10,469 nt of DNA. It comes from Paramicrosporidium saccamoebae KSL3. Lineage: Eukaryota > Fungi > Cryptomycota. The translations under genes were made by a program, and so were the position numbers. How positions within the stretch are numbered: position 1 is the stretch's first letter; each line of letters starts with the position of its first letter. The notes below the pieces were generated by a model. It did not search any database, had not been told where the DNA came from, and worked only from the letters and a program-made list of their open reading frames with translations. Below, piece by piece: positions 581 to 10,469 of the stretch. Where the stretch lies: the NCBI GenBank assembly GCA_002794465.1, contig MTSL01000108.1, positions 1 through 10,469 of the forward strand, read 5' to 3'.

Positions 581-1948
581 TTATGGCTTCTCACAACCGG
601 GTTCGTTGCTAATGCAGTAACGATTGTGACAGGGTCGATCTTGCCAAAACATTCCCACAATCACAAAGATGGAAAATATTACAAACGCACCAGCTGACAC
701 GCAGGCAGCTCCCCATAGCAACACTGCTCCCGTGTACTCTTCGTAGAGATATCCCCCGATGAAAGATCCAAAGACTGCCGGTATTTGCACATATGTGGCC
801 GTGTAGAGCGCCTGGAAGGTCGCCTCCCAGCCCTCAGGGGCGCACTGTGCCGCCTCTCGCACTCCACCCATGTGCGTAAAACTAAAAGAAATGCCGTTCA
901 GAAGTTCCACTGCAATGACTGCATGTCGATCGGTCACGTAATTGTAAGCGCCCAGACGAATCGTCATGGCACCCAATCCAACCAACAGCATCAGCCGCAC
1001 TCCGAGCTTTCTCAGCAAATAGGGTCCGGAGAAGAGAAAAATGATGGAAAAGAAGGATGAGCACAGATAAACTCTCCCAATTTGGTCTTTTTCGAGGCCC
1101 ACCGTGGAGGCCAGATAGGTCGGGAGGAAGAGGTTCATAATCTGACGACCCATTCCGATGGACAGAATCACCGAGAGGAACAGCAAGAAACGCGGGGAGG
1201 CAATGACTCGAATGGTTTGCAGGATAGACGCACGTCCAGGTCCGGCAGCGTCCAGCGTGTTCAACGACGGATCACTCATCCGTGGAGTGGAGGAGGAAGC
1301 ACCCACTAAAAAGACCACCGCGGCAGTGATAATGGACACTATAGGGAATGTATACAGCAGCACATGGGCGCCAAAGTTTTTCACCAAATGACCCAGTCCC
1401 TCTGTCGTCAGTCCATAGGCGATGGTGCCAAATAGCACTTGACGGCTATACAGTGTCTGCTCCACCTGGTAAATATCCTTTAATAGCCGTAATATCTGGA
1501 AATCCATCAGCGGTGAGAGGCCTCCATAAACCAGACCAAATAGTCCCATCACAACACATGTTAACCATAGCCAATACTCTTCCGGCACTAGTCGTTTTAC
1601 CGTGATCCCTTCAAAAGTCACACTCATCCCCAAACACAACGCAATAAACAGGCCCTTATGTATGCCCCGTACGTCTGCCAGTCTGCTCCACAGCGTCACG
1701 CCGATGATGCTGCCGATATTAAAGACAGCCATCGCGTAGCCCATCTTTTTGCTCCGAAACCCCAGGTACTCTTCAAAGAAACAGGGTCTGTAGACGTAGA
1801 ACATGTTCATCAAACTGCCCGTCCAAAAGTAGATGAGTTTAGTTGATAGCAAATGGCGGCGGTCCTGTGATTGCCACCAGCTTGGACTTTTTGCGCTGAG
1901 AGGTGTAGTGGGAGAGGACGTCATTGGCTGATTCCCTTGCCCCGGCAT
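581..1948 (-). CDS. MFS transporter paralogue 1 (MFS_1_like / MFSD6 / NupG-like), 455 aa
   Basis: About 12 hydrophobic helices. Motif A-like LWSRLADVRG; YSRQVLFGTIAYG (cf. family YGRQRLWG motif); C-domain VELLNGISFSF..APEGWEATFQALY..GSFIGGYLY. The track start at 1963 is TTG; the first ATG is at 1948. Stop TAA at 581-583. Confidence 0.92.
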   Translation of the reverse strand: MPGQGNQPMTSSPTTPLSAKSPSWWQSQDRRHLLSTKLIYFWTGSLMNMFYVYRPCFFEEYLGFRSKKMGYAMAVFNIGSIIGVTLWSRLADVRGIHKGLFIALCLGMSVTFEGITVKRLVPEEYWLWLTCVVMGLFGLVYGGLSPLMDFQILRLLKDIYQVEQTLYSRQVLFGTIAYGLTTEGLGHLVKNFGAHVLLYTFPIVSIITAAVVFLVGASSSTPRMSDPSLNTLDAAGPGRASILQTIRVIASPRFLLFLSVILSIGMGRQIMNLFLPTYLASTVGLEKDQIGRVYLCSSFFSIIFLFSGPYLLRKLGVRLMLLVGLGAMTIRLGAYNYVTDRHAVIAVELLNGISFSFTHMGGVREAAQCAPEGWEATFQALYTATYVQIPAVFGSFIGGYLYEEYTGAVLLWGAACVSAGAFVIFSIFVIVGMFWQDRPCHNRYCISNEPGCEKP

Positions 1949-2009
1949 GAATATGGACAGCAAATAGTATCAGTAATTAAAGAGGCCAAGTAAAGCGAAA
2001 ATGAAAAGG

Positions 2010-2018
2010 TATATATAT
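2010..2018 (-). promoter_or_regulatory. TATATATAT element: possible TATA box of MFS1 and/or 3'-end efficiency element of MFS2
   Basis: The only long TA run in the 148-bp spacer, 62-70 nt upstream of ATG 1948 and about 80 nt downstream of the MFS2 stop. Confidence 0.3.
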
Positions 2019-2096
2019 CCTCAGATCACAAATCATGAATAGGTCATATCCACAGGCTACACGTCATCACAAACCACAGACAAAAGGTCTTTATTA

Positions 2097-3386
2097 TCAA
2101 CTCTGCAAATTGCAGGTACGACGGCGGGCCACTCTAAGTATCAAAAATATGGTTAACGCTATGGACGACATGACGGGAGTGGTGAGGGCAACCGTCAACA
2201 GCCACCGTCCCCTATAGTACTTATAAATATATCCACCGACAAGAGAACAGACGACTGCCGGGAATTGCACATGCGCACATCCATAGGCGGCCTGGAATGC
2301 GGCATCCCAGCCTGGAGGTGCGCTTAGAGAAACTTGTTGCACAGCCGCCAAGTGGGTAAAGCTGTAGGCCATGCCGTTTAGTAGCTCTATGAATGGCACC
2401 ATGCTGGGAGTCGGGGTCAGAAAGGCATAGCTGGCCAGGCGAGCAACGAGAGATAGCTGGCCGATTAGGAGCATAGGCCAGATGCCCAAATGAGAGAGCG
2501 CATATGGGGCGGCAAAGTAAAAGAGGACCGAAAACATGGTCCCCATCAAGTAGGCATTTCCAACTTGTCCACTGGATAGTCCGAGCTCTTCAGATAGATA
2601 GTTGGGCAGAAAGATTGCCAGAGTCTGTCGTCCGAACCCGGATGCAAGGATTACAAGCAGAAACAACAAAAAGTTTCGCTGTCCGAGTGTCTCCAAATAT
2701 TTGAAAAACCCCACATTAGCCTCGGAAGACTCTGGATGGTTCCATTGCTGATTGATACTGCTGCGTTTCGCGGACATGCGTCCATATCCAAAACAGGCGA
2801 CCATTACGGCCGCAAATATTGCCGAAGAGGGAACGATCCAGATCATGGCACTGGCTCCGCAGCGGTCAAGCAGCTTGCCAAGACTAAAGGAGATGAGTCC
2901 ATAGGCCACCATGCCAAAGAGAGCCTGTCTTCCATACTGCTTACTGCATTGTTCATAGCGCCGTTCTAGCAGCCGTAATATCTGATCATCGGCAAGCGGA
3001 AGAAGCCCCCCAATAAGCAGCCCATACAGCGCAAACACTGCCACTGCCAAATATATCCACTTTTCTGGTGCAACAAGTCCTTTGAAGAGGACTCCCTCAA
3101 AGCAGATGCCCATGGACAGACACAACCCCACCAGCAGTCCCTTGTGAAGACTGGTCCAATCTGCCAAGTTGCTCCACAGCGTAACGCCAGCAAAACTGAA
3201 CACGTTCCAGAAAGTCTGTACGATACCGTACTGGTCCTCACCGAAGCCAAAATACTCGGTGAAGAAGCGCATGCGAAAGACATAGAACGAATAGTTCAGG
3301 ATGCCGATAGCAAAATAGATGGCCTTGGGAGCAAGACAGAATTGCTGGTCAAGGCTAACTGTAGGTGTGAGTGTGGATGGTGGCAT
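2097..3386 (-). CDS. MFS transporter paralogue 2 (MFS_1_like / NupG-like), 429 aa
   Basis: Collinear with paralogues 1 and 3: GVTLWSNLAD, GGLLPLADDQILRLL, YGRQALFGMVAYG, GFGRQ, ELLNGMAYSFTHL, APPGWDAAFQA. The track start at 3422 is TTG; the first ATG is at 3386. Ends TGA TAA TAA. Confidence 0.92.
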   Translation of the reverse strand: MPPSTLTPTVSLDQQFCLAPKAIYFAIGILNYSFYVFRMRFFTEYFGFGEDQYGIVQTFWNVFSFAGVTLWSNLADWTSLHKGLLVGLCLSMGICFEGVLFKGLVAPEKWIYLAVAVFALYGLLIGGLLPLADDQILRLLERRYEQCSKQYGRQALFGMVAYGLISFSLGKLLDRCGASAMIWIVPSSAIFAAVMVACFGYGRMSAKRSSINQQWNHPESSEANVGFFKYLETLGQRNFLLFLLVILASGFGRQTLAIFLPNYLSEELGLSSGQVGNAYLMGTMFSVLFYFAAPYALSHLGIWPMLLIGQLSLVARLASYAFLTPTPSMVPFIELLNGMAYSFTHLAAVQQVSLSAPPGWDAAFQAAYGCAHVQFPAVVCSLVGGYIYKYYRGRWLLTVALTTPVMSSIALTIFLILRVARRRTCNLQS

Positions 3387-3533
3387 GTAAAGTGTACAAC
3401 GGCCTCGTTTTGCATTCGCCAACTTTTGGCAAATTCCCTAGTGACCCCCGCAGTTTCTAATATAGTGTGAAATGGCGAGTTGAGAATGTGTAAAATGGTG
3501 AAATATTTGTATACTCAAGTATAAAGTGGTAAG

Positions 3534-3717
3534 TAACCGTGTACTTGTTTAAAATCCAACTTTGTACTTGCCCGAAATTCAACTTTGTACTCGCCCGAAA
3601 TTCAACTTTGTACTCGCCCGAAATTCAACTTTGTACTCGCTCGGAATACAACTTTGTACTCACTCGAAATCCAACTTTGTACTCACTCGGAATACAACTT
3701 TGTACTCACTTGAAATA
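3534..3717. repeat. 23-bp tandem minisatellite, 7 good copies plus 1 degenerate copy; best-conserved unit CAACTTTGTACTCGCCCGAAATT
   Basis: CAACTTTGTACT recurs exactly at 3557, 3580, 3603, 3626, 3649, 3672 and 3695 (period 23). Degenerate copy TAACCGTGTACTTGTTTAAAATC at 3534. Confidence 0.97.
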
Positions 3718-3766
3718 TTAAATGACTAAAATGCATGTCTACGCAAAAATAATCTATTGAATTGCT

Positions 3767-5212
3767 CTATTTAGACAGTCTACGAGATGATTGAAACATT
3801 TGGAATACCAAATAGCATGATAGAAGGACAGAGCTAACGACGGGAAAGGCGAGCGCAATTCTAAGCAAAGTCTTTCGTTCGCACCATTTCACCAGATATC
3901 CACCCACTATGGGACATACCATTGCGGGCAACTGTACAAAGATGCAACCGTATACCGCTTGGAATGTGGCCTCCCATCCGGGTGGCGCACACTCTGTCGC
4001 CTCCTGCACTGCTGCCAGATGCGTAAAGCTGTAGCCCATCCCGTTCAGTAGCTCTACAAACGGCACAAGGTGGGGATGCGGCGTGAAGAATGCATAAATG
4101 GAGATGCGCATAATCATGGCGAGCTGGCCGATAAGCAACATTGGTCTCACTCCCAAATAGCGGAAGGAGATGGGAGCGCAAAAATAAAAGAGGATGGAGA
4201 AGCAAGAGCTGCCGAGATAGGCATTTCCAATCTGATTTTCGCTCAGAAGAAGCTCCTTATTTAGGAATTGGGGTAGATAAAATTTCAGGGTTTGACGGCC
4301 AAAGCCGGTGGCCATGACGACGAGCAGACACAGGATAAACCGTGGCCGCGCTATTGTCGTTACATAGCTGGAAAAGCTGGTAGAGCTCGTTTCAGACAGA
4401 GCCAACAGCTTCTCGTCCCCCATCGTCTTTTCAGAAAGGACCACCAGCTCTTCTTCTCCCATAGTCTTCTCAGACGAGACCAAAAGTTCTTCATTTTCAA
4501 TCGTCTTTTCCATCCGCTCCTCGGTCGGCGTGGTGTGGTAACCAAACATGAGGACAGAGGTGCTGGCAAGCAATCCTGCAACAGGGACTATGACAAAGAA
4601 GACACCGACTTTGTAAATGTCAAAGAGATAGCTGGCCGTCTTGGTGATGATGCCGTAAACCAACATTCCCATCATGGCCTGTCGTCCGTACTGCGACTTG
4701 TCCTTTCCAAATCGTCTGGTGAGCAGCTTCAGAATCTGATCATCGGTAAGAGGCATCAGACCGCCTAGCAGTAGGCCGTACAGACCACACGTCGTAAAGG
4801 CCAGATAGTGCCAATACTGTTTGTCCAGATAGGCTGTCAGCAGGCCCAACTCAAACACGGCACTCATCGCCAGACAAATGCCAACCAGCATGATCCTATG
4901 TATTCCCAGTCGGTCTGCCAGGCTGCTCCACAGGGTGACACCCACAAAACTGGCCATGTTCATCACTCCCATCACGTAGCAACATAGATCCTCCTCAAAG
5001 CCAAAATGCTGTGTAAGCAGTTTCATGCGGTACACATCAAACGCATAGTTTAGTGCACCTACCGCGAAGCAGATATACTTTGGGGTGAGCAGAAAGCGGT
5101 TGTTGAGGGTGAGGGCTCCCTGAAAAGACATCTGCTTGTGGCCCCGGACGCGCTGGTTTTGCTCAAGTGGCTCCCATTGGTGGGTTTTTCGTAAATGCAT
5201 GCGCCGCGCCAT
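3767..5212 (-). CDS. MFS transporter paralogue 3 (MFS_1_like / NupG-like), 481 aa from first ATG; real start may be ATG 5131 (454 aa)
   Basis: Same motifs: GVTLWSSLADRLG, GGLMPLTDDQILKLL, YGRQAMMG, GFGRQ, ELLNGMGYSFTHL, APPGWEATFQA. ATG 5131 (MSFQG) gives an N-terminal tail close in length to that of paralogue 2. Stop TAG at 3767-3769. Confidence 0.92.
   Translation of the reverse strand: MARRMHLRKTHQWEPLEQNQRVRGHKQMSFQGALTLNNRFLLTPKYICFAVGALNYAFDVYRMKLLTQHFGFEEDLCCYVMGVMNMASFVGVTLWSSLADRLGIHRIMLVGICLAMSAVFELGLLTAYLDKQYWHYLAFTTCGLYGLLLGGLMPLTDDQILKLLTRRFGKDKSQYGRQAMMGMLVYGIITKTASYLFDIYKVGVFFVIVPVAGLLASTSVLMFGYHTTPTEERMEKTIENEELLVSSEKTMGEEELVVLSEKTMGDEKLLALSETSSTSFSSYVTTIARPRFILCLLVVMATGFGRQTLKFYLPQFLNKELLLSENQIGNAYLGSSCFSILFYFCAPISFRYLGVRPMLLIGQLAMIMRISIYAFFTPHPHLVPFVELLNGMGYSFTHLAAVQEATECAPPGWEATFQAVYGCIFVQLPAMVCPIVGGYLVKWCERKTLLRIALAFPVVSSVLLSCYLVFQMFQSSRRLSK
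4391..4510 (-). repeat. Intragenic 39-bp (13-aa) tandem repeat x3 in the central loop of MFS paralogue 3
   Basis: Protein EKTIENEELLVSS / EKTMGEEELVVLS / EKTMGDEKLLALS / ET. DNA units on the + strand start at 4391, 4430 and 4469 (YTCAGA...ATMGTCTT). Confidence 0.9.
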
Positions 5213-5298: not shown

Positions 5299-5666
5299 AT
5301 GCCCTCTGCAGTAGGTGTCGACCTGAATAAGAAGCTGACTGTCAAGGTAAATGTTGTCAAGCGATACGCCAAGGAGATTGCATATTATCGCAAGGAGCAT
5401 TCGGAACAGGACGCCAAAATAACGGGACTGCGTGCCCAAGAGTGCTGTCCACATGACCTGGCCAACCAAGTAGCGGTTGGAAAGGAGACGGAGGCTGTGC
5501 TCAACGAGTGTCAGACGCGCTACAAGGAGGCGTGCGATGACTTGCGCGATTTCTTGGTACAAGGTCGCAAAGTATTATAATTGTTTAGAAACGACATGCG
5601 CCTGAAGAGTTTAATGCCGAGCAATACAATTCCGCCGAGTCATTAGCCACTGAAACTATAGTATAA
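5299..5666 (+). CDS. TBCA: Tubulin-binding cofactor A (TBCA/RBL2), join(5299..5556,5589..5666), 111 aa
   Basis: KKLTVKVNVVKRYAKEIAYYRKE..EQDAKI...ETEAVLNECQTRYKEACDDLRDFL follows the TBCA pattern (IKIKTGVVKRLVKE...ESRMMIPDCQRRLEAAYLDL). Removing GT..AG 5557-5588 adds a family-length C-terminal helix (KRHAPEEFNAEQYNSAESLATETIV). Confidence 0.88.
5557..5588 (+). other. Predicted 32-nt phase-0 spliceosomal intron in TBCA
   Basis: GTACAA...ATTATAATTGTTTAG. It contains the TAA that ends the track ORF, and splicing gives a 111-aa protein. Confidence 0.7.
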
Positions 5667-5890: not shown

Positions 5891-6865
5891 CTAGTGTGCA
5901 CCTCTACCTACTCTACATTCAACTATATTGGAGGTTGCCAATCCAGGAATTTGGGAAAGAAACAATTCTTTGGCGCTCTGCAACTCGGCCTCAAGACAGA
6001 ATATAAATGCATTGGGTCCCGCGTCAAAAGTATACGCCAGTCTGACATTCTCTCGATTGTAACCATGCACCAGATGTATCACCGTGCGAGAAGCCTCGTT
6101 CAAATAAAATACAGGAGGATAGGAATCCATGCAAACTGCATGGAACTGATTTGAGTCGCGCATGACCAGCTCTGCAAATTTTGAAAAATCGCGCTGTTCA
6201 ATGGCGCGGAGAAGATGGGCGATATGGTCAGGCACTTTCTCCAGACGCGATGGAAAAAGTTCTGACGTGTGGACTGTGCGTTCCATGCCTGCTGCACTAG
6301 ATACAGCTTTCTCTGCAGCTGACAGGATGAGCACCAAACAACACAGCTCGGGCCAGTGTCCTGGTGCAATTATACTTTTCGAAATCGAGTCGCTGCCATC
6401 AGTCTGAATACCCGACTCCCACAAAACGAATCCATCAAACAGACTTCTACAGGCGCTCCCAGAGCCCAGCCTTGCCGCAATCGACTTTTGATTGGCATCA
6501 AGTGGGATCATTCCGGATATGGCAGTGACAAGCGCGGCATATCCCGAGGCGGAAGAGGCGAGCCCGGCCGCAGTAGGAAACATATTCTCCGTTCTAACTT
6601 TGACACACGGGAAATCTGCAATACTCCGAAGATATTTCAAACAGCGTTTAATACGCTCATTGGGTGCCGACTCGACGCCATTCAGTATCACCGAGTCCTC
6701 GTGATGCGGCTCCACGATTGTTCGCGTCACCAATTGCAAGTCTGAGCTGGTACAAGTCTCCAGCGTGACACTGAGAGAAGAATTTGTGGGTAGATTGAGT
6801 GAGACGTCCCGCTTTCCCCAGTACTTTACCAATGCAATATTGACCGGTGCCTCTGCCTCATACAT
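5891..6865 (-). CDS. MVD1: Diphosphomevalonate decarboxylase (GHMP superfamily), 324 aa
   Basis: Diagnostic motifs APVNIALVKYWGKRD, LPTNSSLSVTL, FPTAAGLASSASGYAAL, ARLGSGSACRSLFDGFV, RDSNQFHA and YTFDAGPN (catalytic Asp). Confidence 0.97.
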   Translation of the reverse strand: MYEAEAPVNIALVKYWGKRDVSLNLPTNSSLSVTLETCTSSDLQLVTRTIVEPHHEDSVILNGVESAPNERIKRCLKYLRSIADFPCVKVRTENMFPTAAGLASSASGYAALVTAISGMIPLDANQKSIAARLGSGSACRSLFDGFVLWESGIQTDGSDSISKSIIAPGHWPELCCLVLILSAAEKAVSSAAGMERTVHTSELFPSRLEKVPDHIAHLLRAIEQRDFSKFAELVMRDSNQFHAVCMDSYPPVFYLNEASRTVIHLVHGYNRENVRLAYTFDAGPNAFIFCLEAELQSAKELFLSQIPGLATSNIVECRVGRGAH

Positions 6866-7102
6866 GGCAAATACTGATTGGCCAGTATATGGGCTTGATT
6901 AGGATCCTGTTGAATGATGAGAGTATATCCTTGTTATAGTACATGGCACATAGTCTGCCATCTTCAACAAACCGGATTGTAATCAGGATTGCCAATCGCA
7001 AGGGAACACTGTTTAACAGGGTTTATTAGTGGACAGAGGTTTTACTGGTAAAGTAGACGGCGCTTTTATAGACCGCCGCCCTCATCTGATTGGATACTCG
7101 AA
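6866..7102. promoter_or_regulatory. 237-bp divergent promoter region of MVD1 and VID27, with CCAAT-type motifs
   Basis: Head-to-head start codons. CTGATTGG at 6874-6881 and 7086-7093, plus GCCAATC near 6990. Confidence 0.45.
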
Positions 7103-9160
7103 ATGTTCATGTTAAAGACACTCAGTCGGTTCATCTTGGGAGATGACACACAAAAAGAGCTATTTAAGCTCCCAACTGGAGAGCTTTGGCAGACAGAGTT
7201 AAAGAAGAAAGTCTTGAATAGGACCAGAGTGTATCCAAATGCTTCAGTGACCCTGCAAAGGCTAGACCAGCCGTTCGAGTTTGCGCTCGTCGTAGAGGAG
7301 GCTGGTGAGGAGAACGGCAAGTCTACAGAATGTCCGATATTCGCCAATATGGATTTTGAGCGGCATTACGGAGACGATGGCGAGGCTATTTTTAGCTGGG
7401 CGGGGGAGGGTGTAAAGTATCGGTATGAGTTTGTGGCGGACCCGTCCACGACTCCCTCCACCATTGAAATGTTCCATGTAATTGTTGCACAGTGCCTCTA
7501 CTCCACCATGCAGAGGAGACCACACACTGAGGCCACCGACGACGAGCTGCAGCAGTTATTGGTTGTGTCAAGAAATGACCAGCCACTACTGACGAGCGGA
7601 GAGCTGTTCAAGTCCGAGTTGGCACTTTTCTATGTCTTTGATGCTTCAACCGGAGTTTTCTTGCCCAAAAGCGAACAATCTGTGAACGCCATCATCTCTA
7701 TCGACGATAAGGGCAAGGTCTTTTACTTGTCAGTTGTAACAGTTGACGGAACCGAGCTGCACAGACAAGTGGTCGACCCAGATGCTACCCTCCACACTGA
7801 TCGTCCCAATAATTCTTTCATCTGGTGCCACTTCAATGATGCGGGCTACACGTGGACATTTAGTCTCCGTTTCACTGATTCTGTGGGACTCATGGGCATG
7901 TCAAATGCAATGGGAATGACGATTTACGAGATTCTAAACAACTCCAAGGTATCAGAGGAGGATTCAAAGTATCTAATGAGCGCCTTTACTGCGGATGTGG
8001 AAATGGTAGACGCTAGCAGCGAGGAGAGCGGGTCTGACGTGTCAGATGTAGAGTCTGAAGCATCCGGTTTGGATGAGGAACGGTATGAAATGCAAAAGTC
8101 CGAATCTGCAAACCAGCAGCTTGTTGTTGGATTCAAGAATGACCGCTCGTTTGTGACTCGCGGGAACACGATTAGTGTGTTCAAGCACACGGCTGATGAT
8201 TCAATCCAGCTGGCTGCAAATATTGACAAGGTTCAGAACACCAAGGGTCGCAAGTTTAATCCTACCAAGATGATGCTTCACGAGGAAGACAAATCCATGG
8301 TGCTAATGGATGCTGCAGACCCGAGTCATCTGTTCAAAATGGATTTGGAATATGGAAAGGTGGTTGAGGATTGGAAGGTTCATCCCAATGAAACCACCAG
8401 TATCACTGCCATCATCCCCGACTCCAAGTACGCGCAAATGACCAGCAATCAGACACTGATTGGACTCAATCCAAACTCAATATTCCGAATCGATCCGCGT
8501 CTCCCAGGCACAAAGAGGGTGGATAATGAGATGAAGTCTTATGTGGTCAAGAATGACTTTACATGTGGAACGACCACGGGAAATGGTGAATTGGCCGTTG
8601 CTAGTGCCAAGGGGGAGATTCGATTGTTCGACAAGCTCGACAAACGAGCCAAAACGCTGCTCCCTGGATTTGGAGACGCAATCTTGGGAATCGATGTCAC
8701 TGAGAGCGGAAAGTACATTATTGCTACCTGCAAGACCTATCTGTTACTCATCTGCACCGAAATTCCCGGGACCGATTCGCTGGGCTTTAAAAAGTCGATG
8801 GGCGCCCAGAAGCCGATCCCGAAGCGCCTACAGCTCAAACCCGAGCACGTGGCATATATGGGCACTCCCATCTCCTTCACACCCGCCCGCTTCAGTACAG
8901 GACAGAGCGAGGAGCGCGCAATCATCACCAGCACTGGTCCTTACGTCATCACATGGAATCTTAGACGAGTGAAACAGGGCGCAATGTATGAATACCAAAT
9001 TAGAAAGTACCAAGAAGACGTAGTTGCCGATAACTTCCGCTACGGCCAAGATCGAAATATTGTAGTCACCCTGCCCAACCATGTAACGATGATCTCCAAG
9101 CAAAGCCTGGCAACACCCTCTGCAAGCCTGTTCAAAAGCGACATTGTTCAGAAGTATTAG
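7103..9160 (+). CDS. VID27: Vacuolar import and degradation protein 27 (VID27/CYPRO4 family), 685 aa
   Basis: N-terminus LSRFILGDDTQKELFKLPTGELW, acidic linker (EESGSDVSDVESE), and C-terminal WD-like propeller with NSIFRIDPRL, GELAVASAKGEIRLFDKLDKRAKTLLPGFGDAILGIDVT, KYIIATCKTYLLLI and VVADNFRYG. Confidence 0.93.
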   Translation: MFMLKTLSRFILGDDTQKELFKLPTGELWQTELKKKVLNRTRVYPNASVTLQRLDQPFEFALVVEEAGEENGKSTECPIFANMDFERHYGDDGEAIFSWAGEGVKYRYEFVADPSTTPSTIEMFHVIVAQCLYSTMQRRPHTEATDDELQQLLVVSRNDQPLLTSGELFKSELALFYVFDASTGVFLPKSEQSVNAIISIDDKGKVFYLSVVTVDGTELHRQVVDPDATLHTDRPNNSFIWCHFNDAGYTWTFSLRFTDSVGLMGMSNAMGMTIYEILNNSKVSEEDSKYLMSAFTADVEMVDASSEESGSDVSDVESEASGLDEERYEMQKSESANQQLVVGFKNDRSFVTRGNTISVFKHTADDSIQLAANIDKVQNTKGRKFNPTKMMLHEEDKSMVLMDAADPSHLFKMDLEYGKVVEDWKVHPNETTSITAIIPDSKYAQMTSNQTLIGLNPNSIFRIDPRLPGTKRVDNEMKSYVVKNDFTCGTTTGNGELAVASAKGEIRLFDKLDKRAKTLLPGFGDAILGIDVTESGKYIIATCKTYLLLICTEIPGTDSLGFKKSMGAQKPIPKRLQLKPEHVAYMGTPISFTPARFSTGQSEERAIITSTGPYVITWNLRRVKQGAMYEYQIRKYQEDVVADNFRYGQDRNIVVTLPNHVTMISKQSLATPSASLFKSDIVQKY

Positions 9161-9188
9161 CATTCAGGCATGCAACCGAACACTAATC

Positions 9189-9194
9189 AATAAA
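9189..9194 (+). terminator. Possible AATAAA polyadenylation signal of VID27
   Basis: AATAAA about 29 nt after the VID27 stop. Confidence 0.35.
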
Positions 9195-9846
9195 CTATGC
9201 CAATGTAGGTCACGATGGCGGATATTAGTGACTTTTCATTCCCTCCTCCAGTAGCATATCCGCCACCAAGTGTCTAATTATTACGAGATGCTATAGCTAG
9301 TTCTGATATAGAGGATTGACTAGCTGGGTATTTGAAGACATTTTCCTGGTTTCGAGGAGACATTGTGAGACAGGGTGGATTGATCGGCTGAATATTTGGG
9401 GGCTATTAAGTTATTTGTGAGACCACAAAAGGACCTGTCCGTTTATAACAAGAGTTCCCTTGCCTCCCAAATCAAGAGCAGTGACAAAGTCCGTAGTATT
9501 ATCCCCATTACGCGACATAAATAAAGAGTCTTATTGCTGGAGTATTTGCGCAACCTTTGACCAATTCGCCCTGAAATTTATCTAACACAAACATACATAT
9601 TTGTATTTACAAATCACCTCGCAAGTATTCCTTGAGAAGAGGTGGGAGTGGTGCGGAAATATCAAAAGCTACCGGGTACAGGAGCAAGTACGCGCAAAGA
9701 GCTTCGTAACTTGTACCAATCCCGAATCCAAAAGGAGTCTTTATCGGAGATCAGTTCTCTAGTCGAAGCATGGTGTTTGCAAGAACACACAGACTAGAGC
9801 ATTATTTTACTGATTGCCCATGACGTCACAAAGAATCATGTTGGTC

Positions 9847-10469
9847 TCACACTGACTCATTATATGCCAACTCGAACTGATGCAGCGACGATCGAAACAT
9901 GACTCGAAAAACTGTAACAACCTCCAGAACTCTGACGGGAATGGCATCACGGATGGGATTCAAAAGATGCATTTGCTTGGTGAAATTGAACGTTGTCTGG
10001 AGGTCTCTCTTGCGAACGTCGAGGATGTTAAGAATGCGTGTCCATTCTTTGGGACGGTCCAAGTAACTCTTCTGGAGCTCTTGGATTCTTTCTGAAACCT
10101 GCATCACTATTCCCCAACGTGTGAGACGTTCTTCAACAATCAGGAAACCCTCCGGCAACAGTTTGATTCGATAAAAGACGGCGCTGACTTCGTTGGATGT
10201 TTCTGGAGTATAGATTCTCCAGCGCGCACCAGGAATGCGCGTGGTGGGCGTATAACCGCATCCCACAACCCCACCGTCCAAAAAGTAATCTCGTATCTCT
10301 GGATAATCCTTTGGGTTCATGTCTGTGCGGACATTCCAGGAAATGGAAACGTCTTTTGCAGGAATCCTGACGCCAGATATACGAGCCAATTCCTCCGAGA
10401 AGATATTCGGAATGTCACCTTTTCTGAATGGCTTATCAGGTATCTTGCCGTACCGAACCGCAGAAGTAA
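9847..10469 (-). CDS. Hypothetical protein, 3' portion (at least 207 aa; frame open to the window edge)
   Basis: The track start at 10389 is TTG. The frame stays open upstream to 10469 (TSAVRYGKIPDKPFRKGDIPNIFSEELARISG...). Composition looks globular and coding-like; I recognise no family. Confidence 0.7.
   Translation of the reverse strand, partial: TSAVRYGKIPDKPFRKGDIPNIFSEELARISGVRIPAKDVSISWNVRTDMNPKDYPEIRDYFLDGGVVGCGYTPTTRIPGARWRIYTPETSNEVSAVFYRIKLLPEGFLIVEERLTRWGIVMQVSERIQELQKSYLDRPKEWTRILNILDVRKRDLQTTFNFTKQMHLLNPIRDAIPVRVLEVVTVFRVMFRSSLHQFELAYNESV

Follow-up and report, generated by a model that had tools for sequence, protein, structure and literature searches.

A syntenic array of three MFS_1_like transporter genes with a derived pore signature in the intranuclear parasite Paramicrosporidium saccamoebae

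How does an intranuclear parasite without de novo nucleotide synthesis draw on its host, and which part might be played by three transporter genes that lie side by side in its genome? This question is raised by contig MTSL01000108.1 (assembly GCA_002794465.1), which was analysed over its whole length of 10,469 bp, referred to as the window. The MTSL00000000 genome belongs to Paramicrosporidium saccamoebae, a rozellid that lives as an intranuclear parasite in amoebae. It possesses neither de novo purine and pyrimidine synthesis nor NTT carriers, and nucleoside kinases also seem to be missing (Quandt et al., 2017, PMC5701793). The window carries three co-oriented minus-strand genes encoding proteins of the major facilitator superfamily (MFS), here called copies 1 to 3 (c1, c2 and c3; Table 1). 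An initial annotation had described them as a tandem triplet of diverged NupG-like transporters and as a candidate array, perhaps undescribed, for the uptake of host nucleotides or nucleosides. The best explanation that emerges here holds with a probability of about 0.6, a figure that applies jointly to all its parts: the three genes would encode functional secondary transporters of the MFS_1_like (PF12832) type with 12 helices, which would fall into a lineage-specific derived subclade of the rozellid/microsporidian family holding ThMFS1-4 of Trachipleistophora hominis, would have arisen by stepwise growth at a single locus, would carry a remodelled pore and would import a polar host metabolite.

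Part of this picture has a published basis. For the microsporidian family c_456 it was shown that the T. hominis proteins ThMFS1-4 import ATP and GTP (Major et al., 2019, eLife 8:e47037, PMC6699826). ThMFS1 and ThMFS3 are found at the parasite surface and their transport is insensitive to carbonyl cyanide m-chlorophenylhydrazone (CCCP), while protein expression of ThMFS2 and ThMFS4 was undetected in T. hominis (PMC6699826). Figure 1-source data 2 of the same study lists ten P. saccamoebae homologues including PJF18654.1 (447 amino acids), PJF18653.1 (429 amino acids) and PJF18652.1 (477 amino acids), for which PF12832 is the top Pfam match and the Mitosporidium proteins DI09_30p280 and DI09_25p180 are the best BLAST matches at approximately 1e-22 to 1e-29 (PMC6699826). 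Since these three accessions are consecutive and identical in length to the window genes, they represent c1, c2 and c3, in this order. For P. saccamoebae, which is devoid of NTT carriers, the ThMFS-family homologues were proposed as an alternative route to host nucleotides (PMC6699826), and this is the only published proposal for nucleotide acquisition in this organism. The genes, their family assignment and the nucleotide-uptake hypothesis were thus published in 2019 and are not new, and the triplet is not an undescribed expansion; only its tandem arrangement and its subclade went unremarked, as the P. saccamoebae proteins are tabulated yet stand outside the published tree and the word 'tandem' occurs nowhere in the paper (PMC6699826). 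Consecutive locus tags in the same table (ECU11_1870/1880, EDEG_00275/277/280, SLOPH_0466/0467; PMC6699826) point to frequent tandem duplication in the c_456 family, and in having undergone lineage-specific and tandem duplication the triplet resembles what is usual there. What is new is the syntenic array of one to three copies, the orthology of the individual copies, the selection acting on each of them and the derived pore signature.

That the three genes are intact, co-oriented, intronless and diverged paralogues, as initially described, is borne out. The open reading frames (ORFs) of c1, c2 and c3 contain zero internal stops, the public annotation gives each of them as one uninterrupted range (447, 429 and 477 amino acids) with the same product as the ATG-started ORF, and the end-to-end alignment of the three proteins with their homologues shows no gaps suggestive of introns. 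Amino acid identities in BLASTP comparisons range from 36 to 45%: c1 and c2 share 38.8% (E 6e-93), c1 and c3 36.3% (E 5e-82) and c2 and c3, the closest pair, as had been surmised before, 45.2% (E 6e-125). The reported identity of 33 of 37 bases between 2353-2389 and 4020-4056 is exact, and the stretch encodes the helix-10 motif ELLNGM[A/G]YSFTH. Because the overall nucleotide identity of c2 and c3 is as low as 56% and their synonymous sites are near saturation (proportion of synonymous differences, pS, 0.72), this stretch reflects constraint at the protein level. Recent gene conversion between c2 and c3 was considered and is ruled out by that overall identity, by a third-position identity of only 0.47 within identical codons and by the conserved ELLNGM.YSFTH motif. 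A bacterial origin or contamination is likewise ruled out, by the eukaryotic neighbours encoding tubulin-binding cofactor A (TBCA), VID27 and mevalonate diphosphate decarboxylase (MVD) and by membership in the P. saccamoebae assembly.

Table 1. Features of the window and pore columns of the three transporter copies (positions in the window; aa, amino acids)
Feature	Coordinates	Strand	Description
Copy 1 (c1)	ORF 581-1963; gene 581..1924 from ATG at 1924	-	447 aa MFS_1_like; PJF18654.1 by length and order; b-type
Copy 2 (c2)	ORF 2097-3422; gene 2097..3386 from ATG at 3386	-	429 aa MFS_1_like; PJF18653.1 by length and order; a-type
Copy 3 (c3)	ORF 3767-5212 (481 aa); gene 3767..5200 from ATG at 5200	-	477 aa MFS_1_like; PJF18652.1 by length and order; second a-type
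Helix-5 column of NupG R136	c1 Val163 1436..1438; c2 Ala155 2922-2924; c3 Ala175 4676-4678	-	hmmalign and MAFFT
Helix-8 column of NupG E264	c1 Ser293 1046..1048; c2 Ser286 2529-2531; c3 Ser335 4196-4198	-	hmmalign and MAFFT
Helix-10 column of NupG Y318/canonical Lys (ELLNG)	c1 Asn343 896..898; c2 Asn337 2376-2378; c3 Asn386 4043-4045	-	hmmalign and MAFFT
39-bp (13-residue) tandem repeat inside c3	4392..4507	-	about 2.6 copies (Tandem Repeats Finder); acidic helix 6-7 loop, ...EELLVSSEKTMGEEELVVLSEKTMGDEKLLALSE...
23-bp tandem repeat in c3-c2 spacer	3552..3707	.	6.8 copies, 92% matches; consensus AAATTCAACTTTGTACTCGCCCG on the + strand
TBCA gene	5299..5580	+	tubulin-binding cofactor A; PF02970 at 66 bits; same position in L002-L007; synteny anchor
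MVD gene	5891..6865	-	diphosphomevalonate decarboxylase; PF18376 and PF22700; synteny anchor
VID27 gene	7103..9160	+	PF08553 at 468 bits; synteny anchor

All three proteins find their top family in PF12832 (MFS_1_like; gathering threshold 25.2 bits), with scores of 135.8, 132.2 and 125.7 bits for c1, c2 and c3 and E-values of 1e-36 to 1e-39. The NupG family model PF03825 (threshold 25.9 bits) accepts c1 with 38.9 bits, c2 stays below the threshold with 24.0 bits and c3 yields no match; of the two profiles that the initial annotation had named, PF12832 thus holds for every copy and PF03825 for c1 only. The nucleoside permease model TIGR00889 gave 25.2 bits for c1 against a cut-off of 446.1 and no match for c2 and c3, and the best NCBI curated bacterial model for all three is the 3-phenylpropionate transporter HcaT/PPP, at 39-58 bits against a cut-off of 259. 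With a profile of the triplet clade, 3189 proteins were retrieved at E <= 1e-3, among them Rozella allomycis EPZ35898.1/RKP19139.1 at 2.6e-35, so that the homology to the ThMFS family, which is also supported by the published c_456 list by length and order, stands; EPZ35898.1 (468 amino acids) is probably O9G_003543 of the published family tree. Word-indexed searches with c2 or the clade alignment returned only 9-10 proteins, and the proteins named here were obtained by an exhaustive representative search and by a search seeded with canonical representatives. The same Pfam family includes animal MFSD6 and further eukaryotic MFS_1_like proteins; with the rozellid profile, insect MFSD6 is retrieved at E-values of 1e-20 to 1e-22 and a protein from Chlorella at 6e-52. 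Two further paralogues of P. saccamoebae, PSACC_00393 (465 amino acids) and PSACC_02535 (411 amino acids), lie outside the array on two separate contigs (173 kb and 88 kb).

The fold was modelled for c1 alone, with which c2 and c3 align throughout. The AlphaFold2 model (predicted local distance difference test, pLDDT, 83.9; predicted template modelling score, pTM, 0.80) is all-helical and fits 12 transmembrane helices with a disordered loop at 213-231, and the triplet shares this 12-helix MFS architecture, as well as the PF12832 top match, with ThMFS1-4 and the c_456 family. Helix 7 (244-275) and helix 8 (279-307) of c1 are not separated by a long insertion, nor is there one at that place in c2 and c3. 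The 16-38 residue helix 7-8 indel of microsporidian clade A appears to be absent from the triplet, as judged by inspection of an alignment without clade A sequences, and it is likewise missing from Rozella, Mitosporidium and Amphiamblys (PMC6699826). In Foldseek comparisons with the c1 model the best matches were E. coli NupG (7dla; E 6e-10, template modelling (TM) scores 0.74/0.81) and YegT, the scores of NorA, LacY and DgoT being almost equal to that of NupG; of 375 PDB matches at E <= 0.001, the 50 among the matches listed were all MFS transporters. Run against PDB sequences, the clade profile returned nothing significant, and the link to NupG came through fold comparison only.

To compare the pores, E. 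coli NupG (K-12 record) was aligned over its full length with a profile of 122 diverse representatives (74.8 bits); this broader profile was needed, as hhalign of the clade profile against NupG alone covered the C-terminal half only (probability 73%). In NupG uridine is bound by R136, T140, F143, Q225, N228, Q261, E264, Y318 and F322, of which R136, T140 and E264 hold the ribose (PMC8042404), and the proton relay consists of E264 and of D323 in the helix-10 GxxxD motif (PMC11979927). The three ribose residues are identical in NupG, XapB and YegT; in two alignments the corresponding residues are V, T and S in c1 and A, M and S in c2 and c3. The base ligand Y318 is replaced by Asn and the GxxxD motif of the NHS family (PMC11979927) by GxxxS (ELLNGISFS in c1, ELLNGMAYS in c2, ELLNGMGYS in c3), in which Ser348/342/391 (c1/c2/c3), five residues past the ELLNG Asn, replaces the proton-site Asp323; the pore Gln of the triplet falls in the column of NupG Q225. 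With the ribose Arg and Glu and the proton site absent, only c1 passing PF03825 and HcaT/PPP as the best bacterial model, the triplet does not belong to the NupG/NHS family, and 'NupG-like' denotes a loose likeness within the superfamily. For the microsporidian proteins, Major et al. took the same view of their relation to NupG (PMC6699826).

The changes at these positions set a local clade of 19 sequences, including c1-c3, apart from about 105 other representatives. The R136 column holds Arg in 87 of the others and Val, Ala or Leu, never Arg, in the local clade; the E264 column holds Glu in 97 of the others and Ser or Thr in all 19 members; the Y318 column holds Lys in 73 and His in 18 of the others and Asn, with few Ser or Gly and never Lys, in the local clade. 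The helix-7 column of Q225 is invariantly Gln in the local clade and Ser, Ala or Gly in other sequences. MAFFT L-INS-i placed the same columns together, aligning YGRQ-R-LWGT with YGRQ-[AV]-LFG[TM], ..E..FF with.FS..F.F and IELLKG with ELLNG. Both the Arg and the Glu are retained in NHS and PPP proteins, insect MFSD6, the Chlorella protein, Rozella EPZ35898.1, both published Metchnikovella homologues and PSACC_00393, and the third column is Lys in Rozella and PSACC_00393, Arg in Metchnikovella, His in PPP and Chlorella, Gln in MFSD6 and Tyr in NupG-type NHS proteins. The triplet subclade hence differs from canonical c_456-type members, of which Rozella and PSACC_00393 keep the entire helix-5 Arg, helix-8 Glu and helix-10 Lys set and Metchnikovella has Arg in the third place, and it differs from MFSD6 and the Chlorella protein, which keep the helix-5 Arg and the helix-8 Glu. 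Three of the ten P. saccamoebae family members are therefore atypical, for they lack pore residues whose conservation otherwise extends from bacteria to animals.

In a neighbour-joining tree of 68 sequences, without ThMFS1-4 and core Microsporidia, the local clade is recovered with 100% bootstrap support and is nested among canonical rozellid-like sequences including PSACC_00393; the two Metchnikovella proteins form a long branch outside, and NHS, PPP, MFSD6 and Chlorella proteins fall outside the rozellid group. PSACC_02535 (P0222) and a few uncultured relatives (P0219, P0221, P0023, P0026) have gained the Gln and exchanged Glu for Ser and Lys for Asn in common with the triplet, but they have kept the helix-5 Arg. 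In the simplest reading, the central cavity would have changed stepwise and in this lineage only, the Glu/Lys pair being lost first and the Arg afterwards. The P. saccamoebae genome on its own holds the series of canonical, intermediate and fully derived pore forms.

The history of the array can be followed through its closest homologues, all of them from metagenomes and read-archive assemblies of uncultured organisms (loci are given L numbers and proteins P numbers). Their gene order, checked by tblastn, is conserved: VID27 (where the contig reaches), MVD, usually TBCA, one to three MFS genes and a PreP-type M16 peptidase. The TBCA gene is present at every syntenic locus except L008. Synteny of the MFS locus with one, two or three copies extends across five lineages, with two copies in L002-L005 and in L006, one each in L007 and L008 and three in the window. 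In a neighbour-joining tree, the TBCA-side genes L002_a, L006_a and L007_a form clade 'a' together with c2 and c3 (95% bootstrap), and c1 pairs with P0011 (100% bootstrap) among the PreP-side genes outside this clade. By this placement c1 is the orthologue of the PreP-side gene and c2 that of the TBCA-side gene, and c2 and c3 are both of the TBCA-side type. Since TBCA-side genes group with c2 and c3 and PreP-side genes with c1, the duplication into 'a' and 'b' genes is older than the sampled lineages. The nearest relative, in JGI sample 3300042204, is 82-85% identical in nucleotide sequence. On its contig L010 a c3 orthologue, represented by its C-terminal 76 codons (86.8% amino acid identity), lies directly upstream of the c2 orthologue P0002, so that the order c3 to c2 is preserved, and the separate contig L011 holds a fragment of a c1 orthologue that is 87% identical; the three-gene arrangement hence predates the split from this relative. 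A scan of JGI metagenome contigs for relatives of c3 gave no confirmed match, and the c3 orthologue was found instead as the mis-framed fragment on L010 (3-230), where the gene call is in the wrong frame (2-151).

These data suggest a stepwise growth of the array at one locus, MVD-TBCA-[MFS]-PreP, in which an old duplication would have produced the 'a' gene on the TBCA side (c2) and the 'b' gene on the PreP side (c1), a later duplication of 'a' before the split from the nearest sampled relative would have given rise to c3, and all three copies would have been retained since by purifying selection. The ratio of nonsynonymous to synonymous substitution rates (dN/dS; Nei-Gojobori) is 0.108 over 421 codons for c2 in comparison with P0002 on L010 (87% identical), 0.119 over 72 codons for c3 in comparison with the C-terminal orthologue fragment on L010 and 0.136 over 245 codons for c1 in comparison with the orthologue fragment on L011. 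Each of the three copies is under purifying selection. The initial assumption that selection maintains the duplicates is hereby supported, both by these ratios of 0.11-0.14 and by the synteny of the locus in relatives. As a side observation, the 'a' gene of L002-L005 is annotated with 396 amino acids starting MYFAIG, although its resemblance to c2 and c3 already sets in some 30 bp before that point (L002 9971-10000), which suggests a mis-called start or a short intron. A further local duplication in the family, in a different context, is found on L012 (GCA_020047435.1, JAHZTN010003787.1), where two canonical Arg/Glu/Lys MFS_1_like paralogues at 1148-2425 and 6076-7374 are 3.6 kb apart with a WD40 gene and a mannosyltransferase gene between them.

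Regarding function, the triplet probably imports a polar metabolite of the host at the surface of the parasite, the surface location and a transport without proton coupling being suggested by analogy with ThMFS1 and ThMFS3. A NupG-type proton relay would not be used, and the want of such a proton site fits the CCCP-insensitive transport of these two proteins. Substrate or timing of expression probably sets the three copies apart. Nucleotides or nucleosides are the leading substrate candidates because the parasite has no de novo synthesis of either and no NTT carriers. The label 'ATP/GTP importer' is not simply transferable to the triplet, because two basic and one acidic pore residues are lost in it while a canonical paralogue was retained; the loss of Arg, Glu and Lys, which canonical members keep, weakens the carry-over of ATP/GTP import that the initial annotation had implied. 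For a ThMFS-like import of ATP and GTP, canonical paralogues such as PSACC_00393 would be the better candidates, and the cargo of the triplet may be a different one.

The remodelled pore might also be read as the sign of a more radical change, in which the triplet belongs to the ThMFS family by descent only and its substrate has switched to a non-nucleotide such as a sugar, an organic acid or another host metabolite. The coordinated loss of Arg, Glu and Lys together with the invariant pore Gln, and the intermediate state of PSACC_02535 and its relatives, would agree with such a switch. However, Arg and Glu are kept across NHS, PPP and MFSD6 proteins with their differing substrates and may serve general mechanics, so that their loss need not alter the substrate. 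It also fits that the top bacterial models are HcaT/PPP and galactoside or oligosaccharide permeases and not the nucleoside permease, but scores of 39-58 bits against 259 are far under the cut-off and uninformative on substrate. The near-equal Foldseek scores of NupG, NorA, LacY and DgoT leave room for a cargo other than nucleosides, yet there is no positive pointer to any particular alternative. A switch of this kind is conceivable but doubtful.

The opposite reading, in which all three copies are ThMFS-like surface ATP/GTP importers that differ only in expression stage or purine preference, starts from their place among the tabulated c_456 homologues, from the ATP and GTP import by ThMFS1-4 and from the surface location of ThMFS1 and ThMFS3 (PMC6699826). 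As NTT carriers, de novo synthesis and apparently nucleoside kinases are missing, phosphorylated host nucleotides are needed, and two basic pore residues, the YGRQ Arg and the helix-7 GRQ Arg, remain in the triplet. Nevertheless the helix-5 Arg and the helix-10 Lys are lost along with the helix-8 Glu, and with the canonical PSACC_00393 in the same genome the derived copies need not serve the ancestral function. Furthermore, substrates differ between close paralogues in such families, a caution voiced by Major et al. (PMC6699826), and the triplet shares little sequence identity with its closest published relative in the family, Mitosporidium proteins being the best BLAST matches tabulated there. 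It is rather unlikely that this reading is correct.

A role in an internal membrane (mitochondrion, vacuole or endoplasmic reticulum) with no part in host uptake would be compatible with the conventional mitochondrion described by Quandt et al. (2017, PMC5701793) and with the undetected protein of ThMFS2 and ThMFS4, which leaves a surface location documented for only part of the family, but since the assayed relatives ThMFS1 and ThMFS3 are located at the parasite surface it is improbable. That one or more copies are decaying, functionless duplicates, as the long branch of c3, the longest in clade 'a', its repeat-expanded loop and its missing PF03825 signal might insinuate, is hardly credible in view of three intact, full-length reading frames, family-invariant motifs that are intact in c1, c2 and c3, and orthologues of 86-87% identity with dN/dS of 0.11-0.14, including the sampled part of c3.

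Several points weigh against the explanation preferred here, namely an array of surface importers with a derived pore and with nucleotides or nucleosides as leading candidates. Quandt et al. (2017, PMC5701793) assign nucleoside uptake to PSACC_00918 and PSACC_02618, and the supplements of that study that were examined contain no transporter or expression terms. The pore of the triplet is changed and not neutralised, as three charged cavity residues persist (Arg of YGRQ, Arg of GRQ in helix 7, Glu of ELLNG), so that a nucleotide may still be its substrate. In the reading of the Arg/Glu/Lys triad, two Metchnikovella proteins (R, E, R) and one Rozella protein (R, E, K) served as stand-ins for the assayed ThMFS1-4. 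Finally, the trees are neighbour-joining trees on simple distances, in which the local clade and the adjoining intermediate group are united at only 44% support and c3, with its long branch, is placed inside clade 'a' at 40-75%.

Two tandem repeats distinguish the array of P. saccamoebae. The 39-bp repeat expands the central cytoplasmic loop of c3 into the units EELLVSSEKTMGE / EELVVLSEKTMGD / EKLLALSE..., and this acidic expansion is missing from c1 and c2 in the alignment. Several relatives carry unrelated long insertions at the same site. The 23-bp repeat occupies much of the spacer between c3 and c2, with the c2 start about 165-320 bp downstream of it and the c3 stop 60-215 bp upstream. 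Within the window it is confined to this site, with 5 matches where chance would give 0. Neither the corresponding spacer of the nearest relative (L010) nor any other locus contains it. The repeat could represent a minisatellite peculiar to this species, or it could act as a regulatory array for c2. Scans of the window for tRNA genes and Rfam families returned no matches.

On the far side of the array, the PreP peptidase gene that comes next in all relatives is missing from the window, as the contig stops 580 bp past c1, and the assembly probably breaks inside the c1-PreP spacer. The region 1-580 is AT-rich (GC content 0.39 in comparison with about 0.50 in genes), and 404-510 is 74% identical to contig L011 of the nearest relative. 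Beyond VID27 (9161-10469) the public annotation calls no gene, and a 180-amino-acid ORF at 9847-10389 on the minus strand has no Pfam match; a pseudouridine synthase gene, which follows VID27 in L002, L004 and L006, left no trace in the window by tblastn. The L002-L005 lineage has an unannotated gene of 377-398 amino acids between VID27 and MVD (L002 6597-7730). This gene is absent from L006 and L007 and likewise from the window, where VID27 and MVD are adjacent with a 237-bp spacer (6866-7102).

As for the meaning of these findings, the picture of the family as a whole is unchanged, because the genes and the hypothesis of nucleotide uptake had already been published. They do, however, caution against annotating every ThMFS homologue as an 'ATP/GTP importer'. 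As a tentative and on balance unlikely extension, the Gln/Ser/Asn subclade, comprising the triplet, its syntenic orthologues and distantly PSACC_02535, may represent a neofunctionalised class that is confined to Paramicrosporidium-like rozellids and whose less charged pore takes up another host metabolite than do the canonical ThMFS-type carriers. If this were true, the cargo of the subclade might be a nucleoside or nucleotide species of the host nucleus, and the array would be an adaptation to intranuclear parasitism. With canonical, intermediate and derived forms present in one genome, P. saccamoebae offers a clean comparative system for transport in this family.

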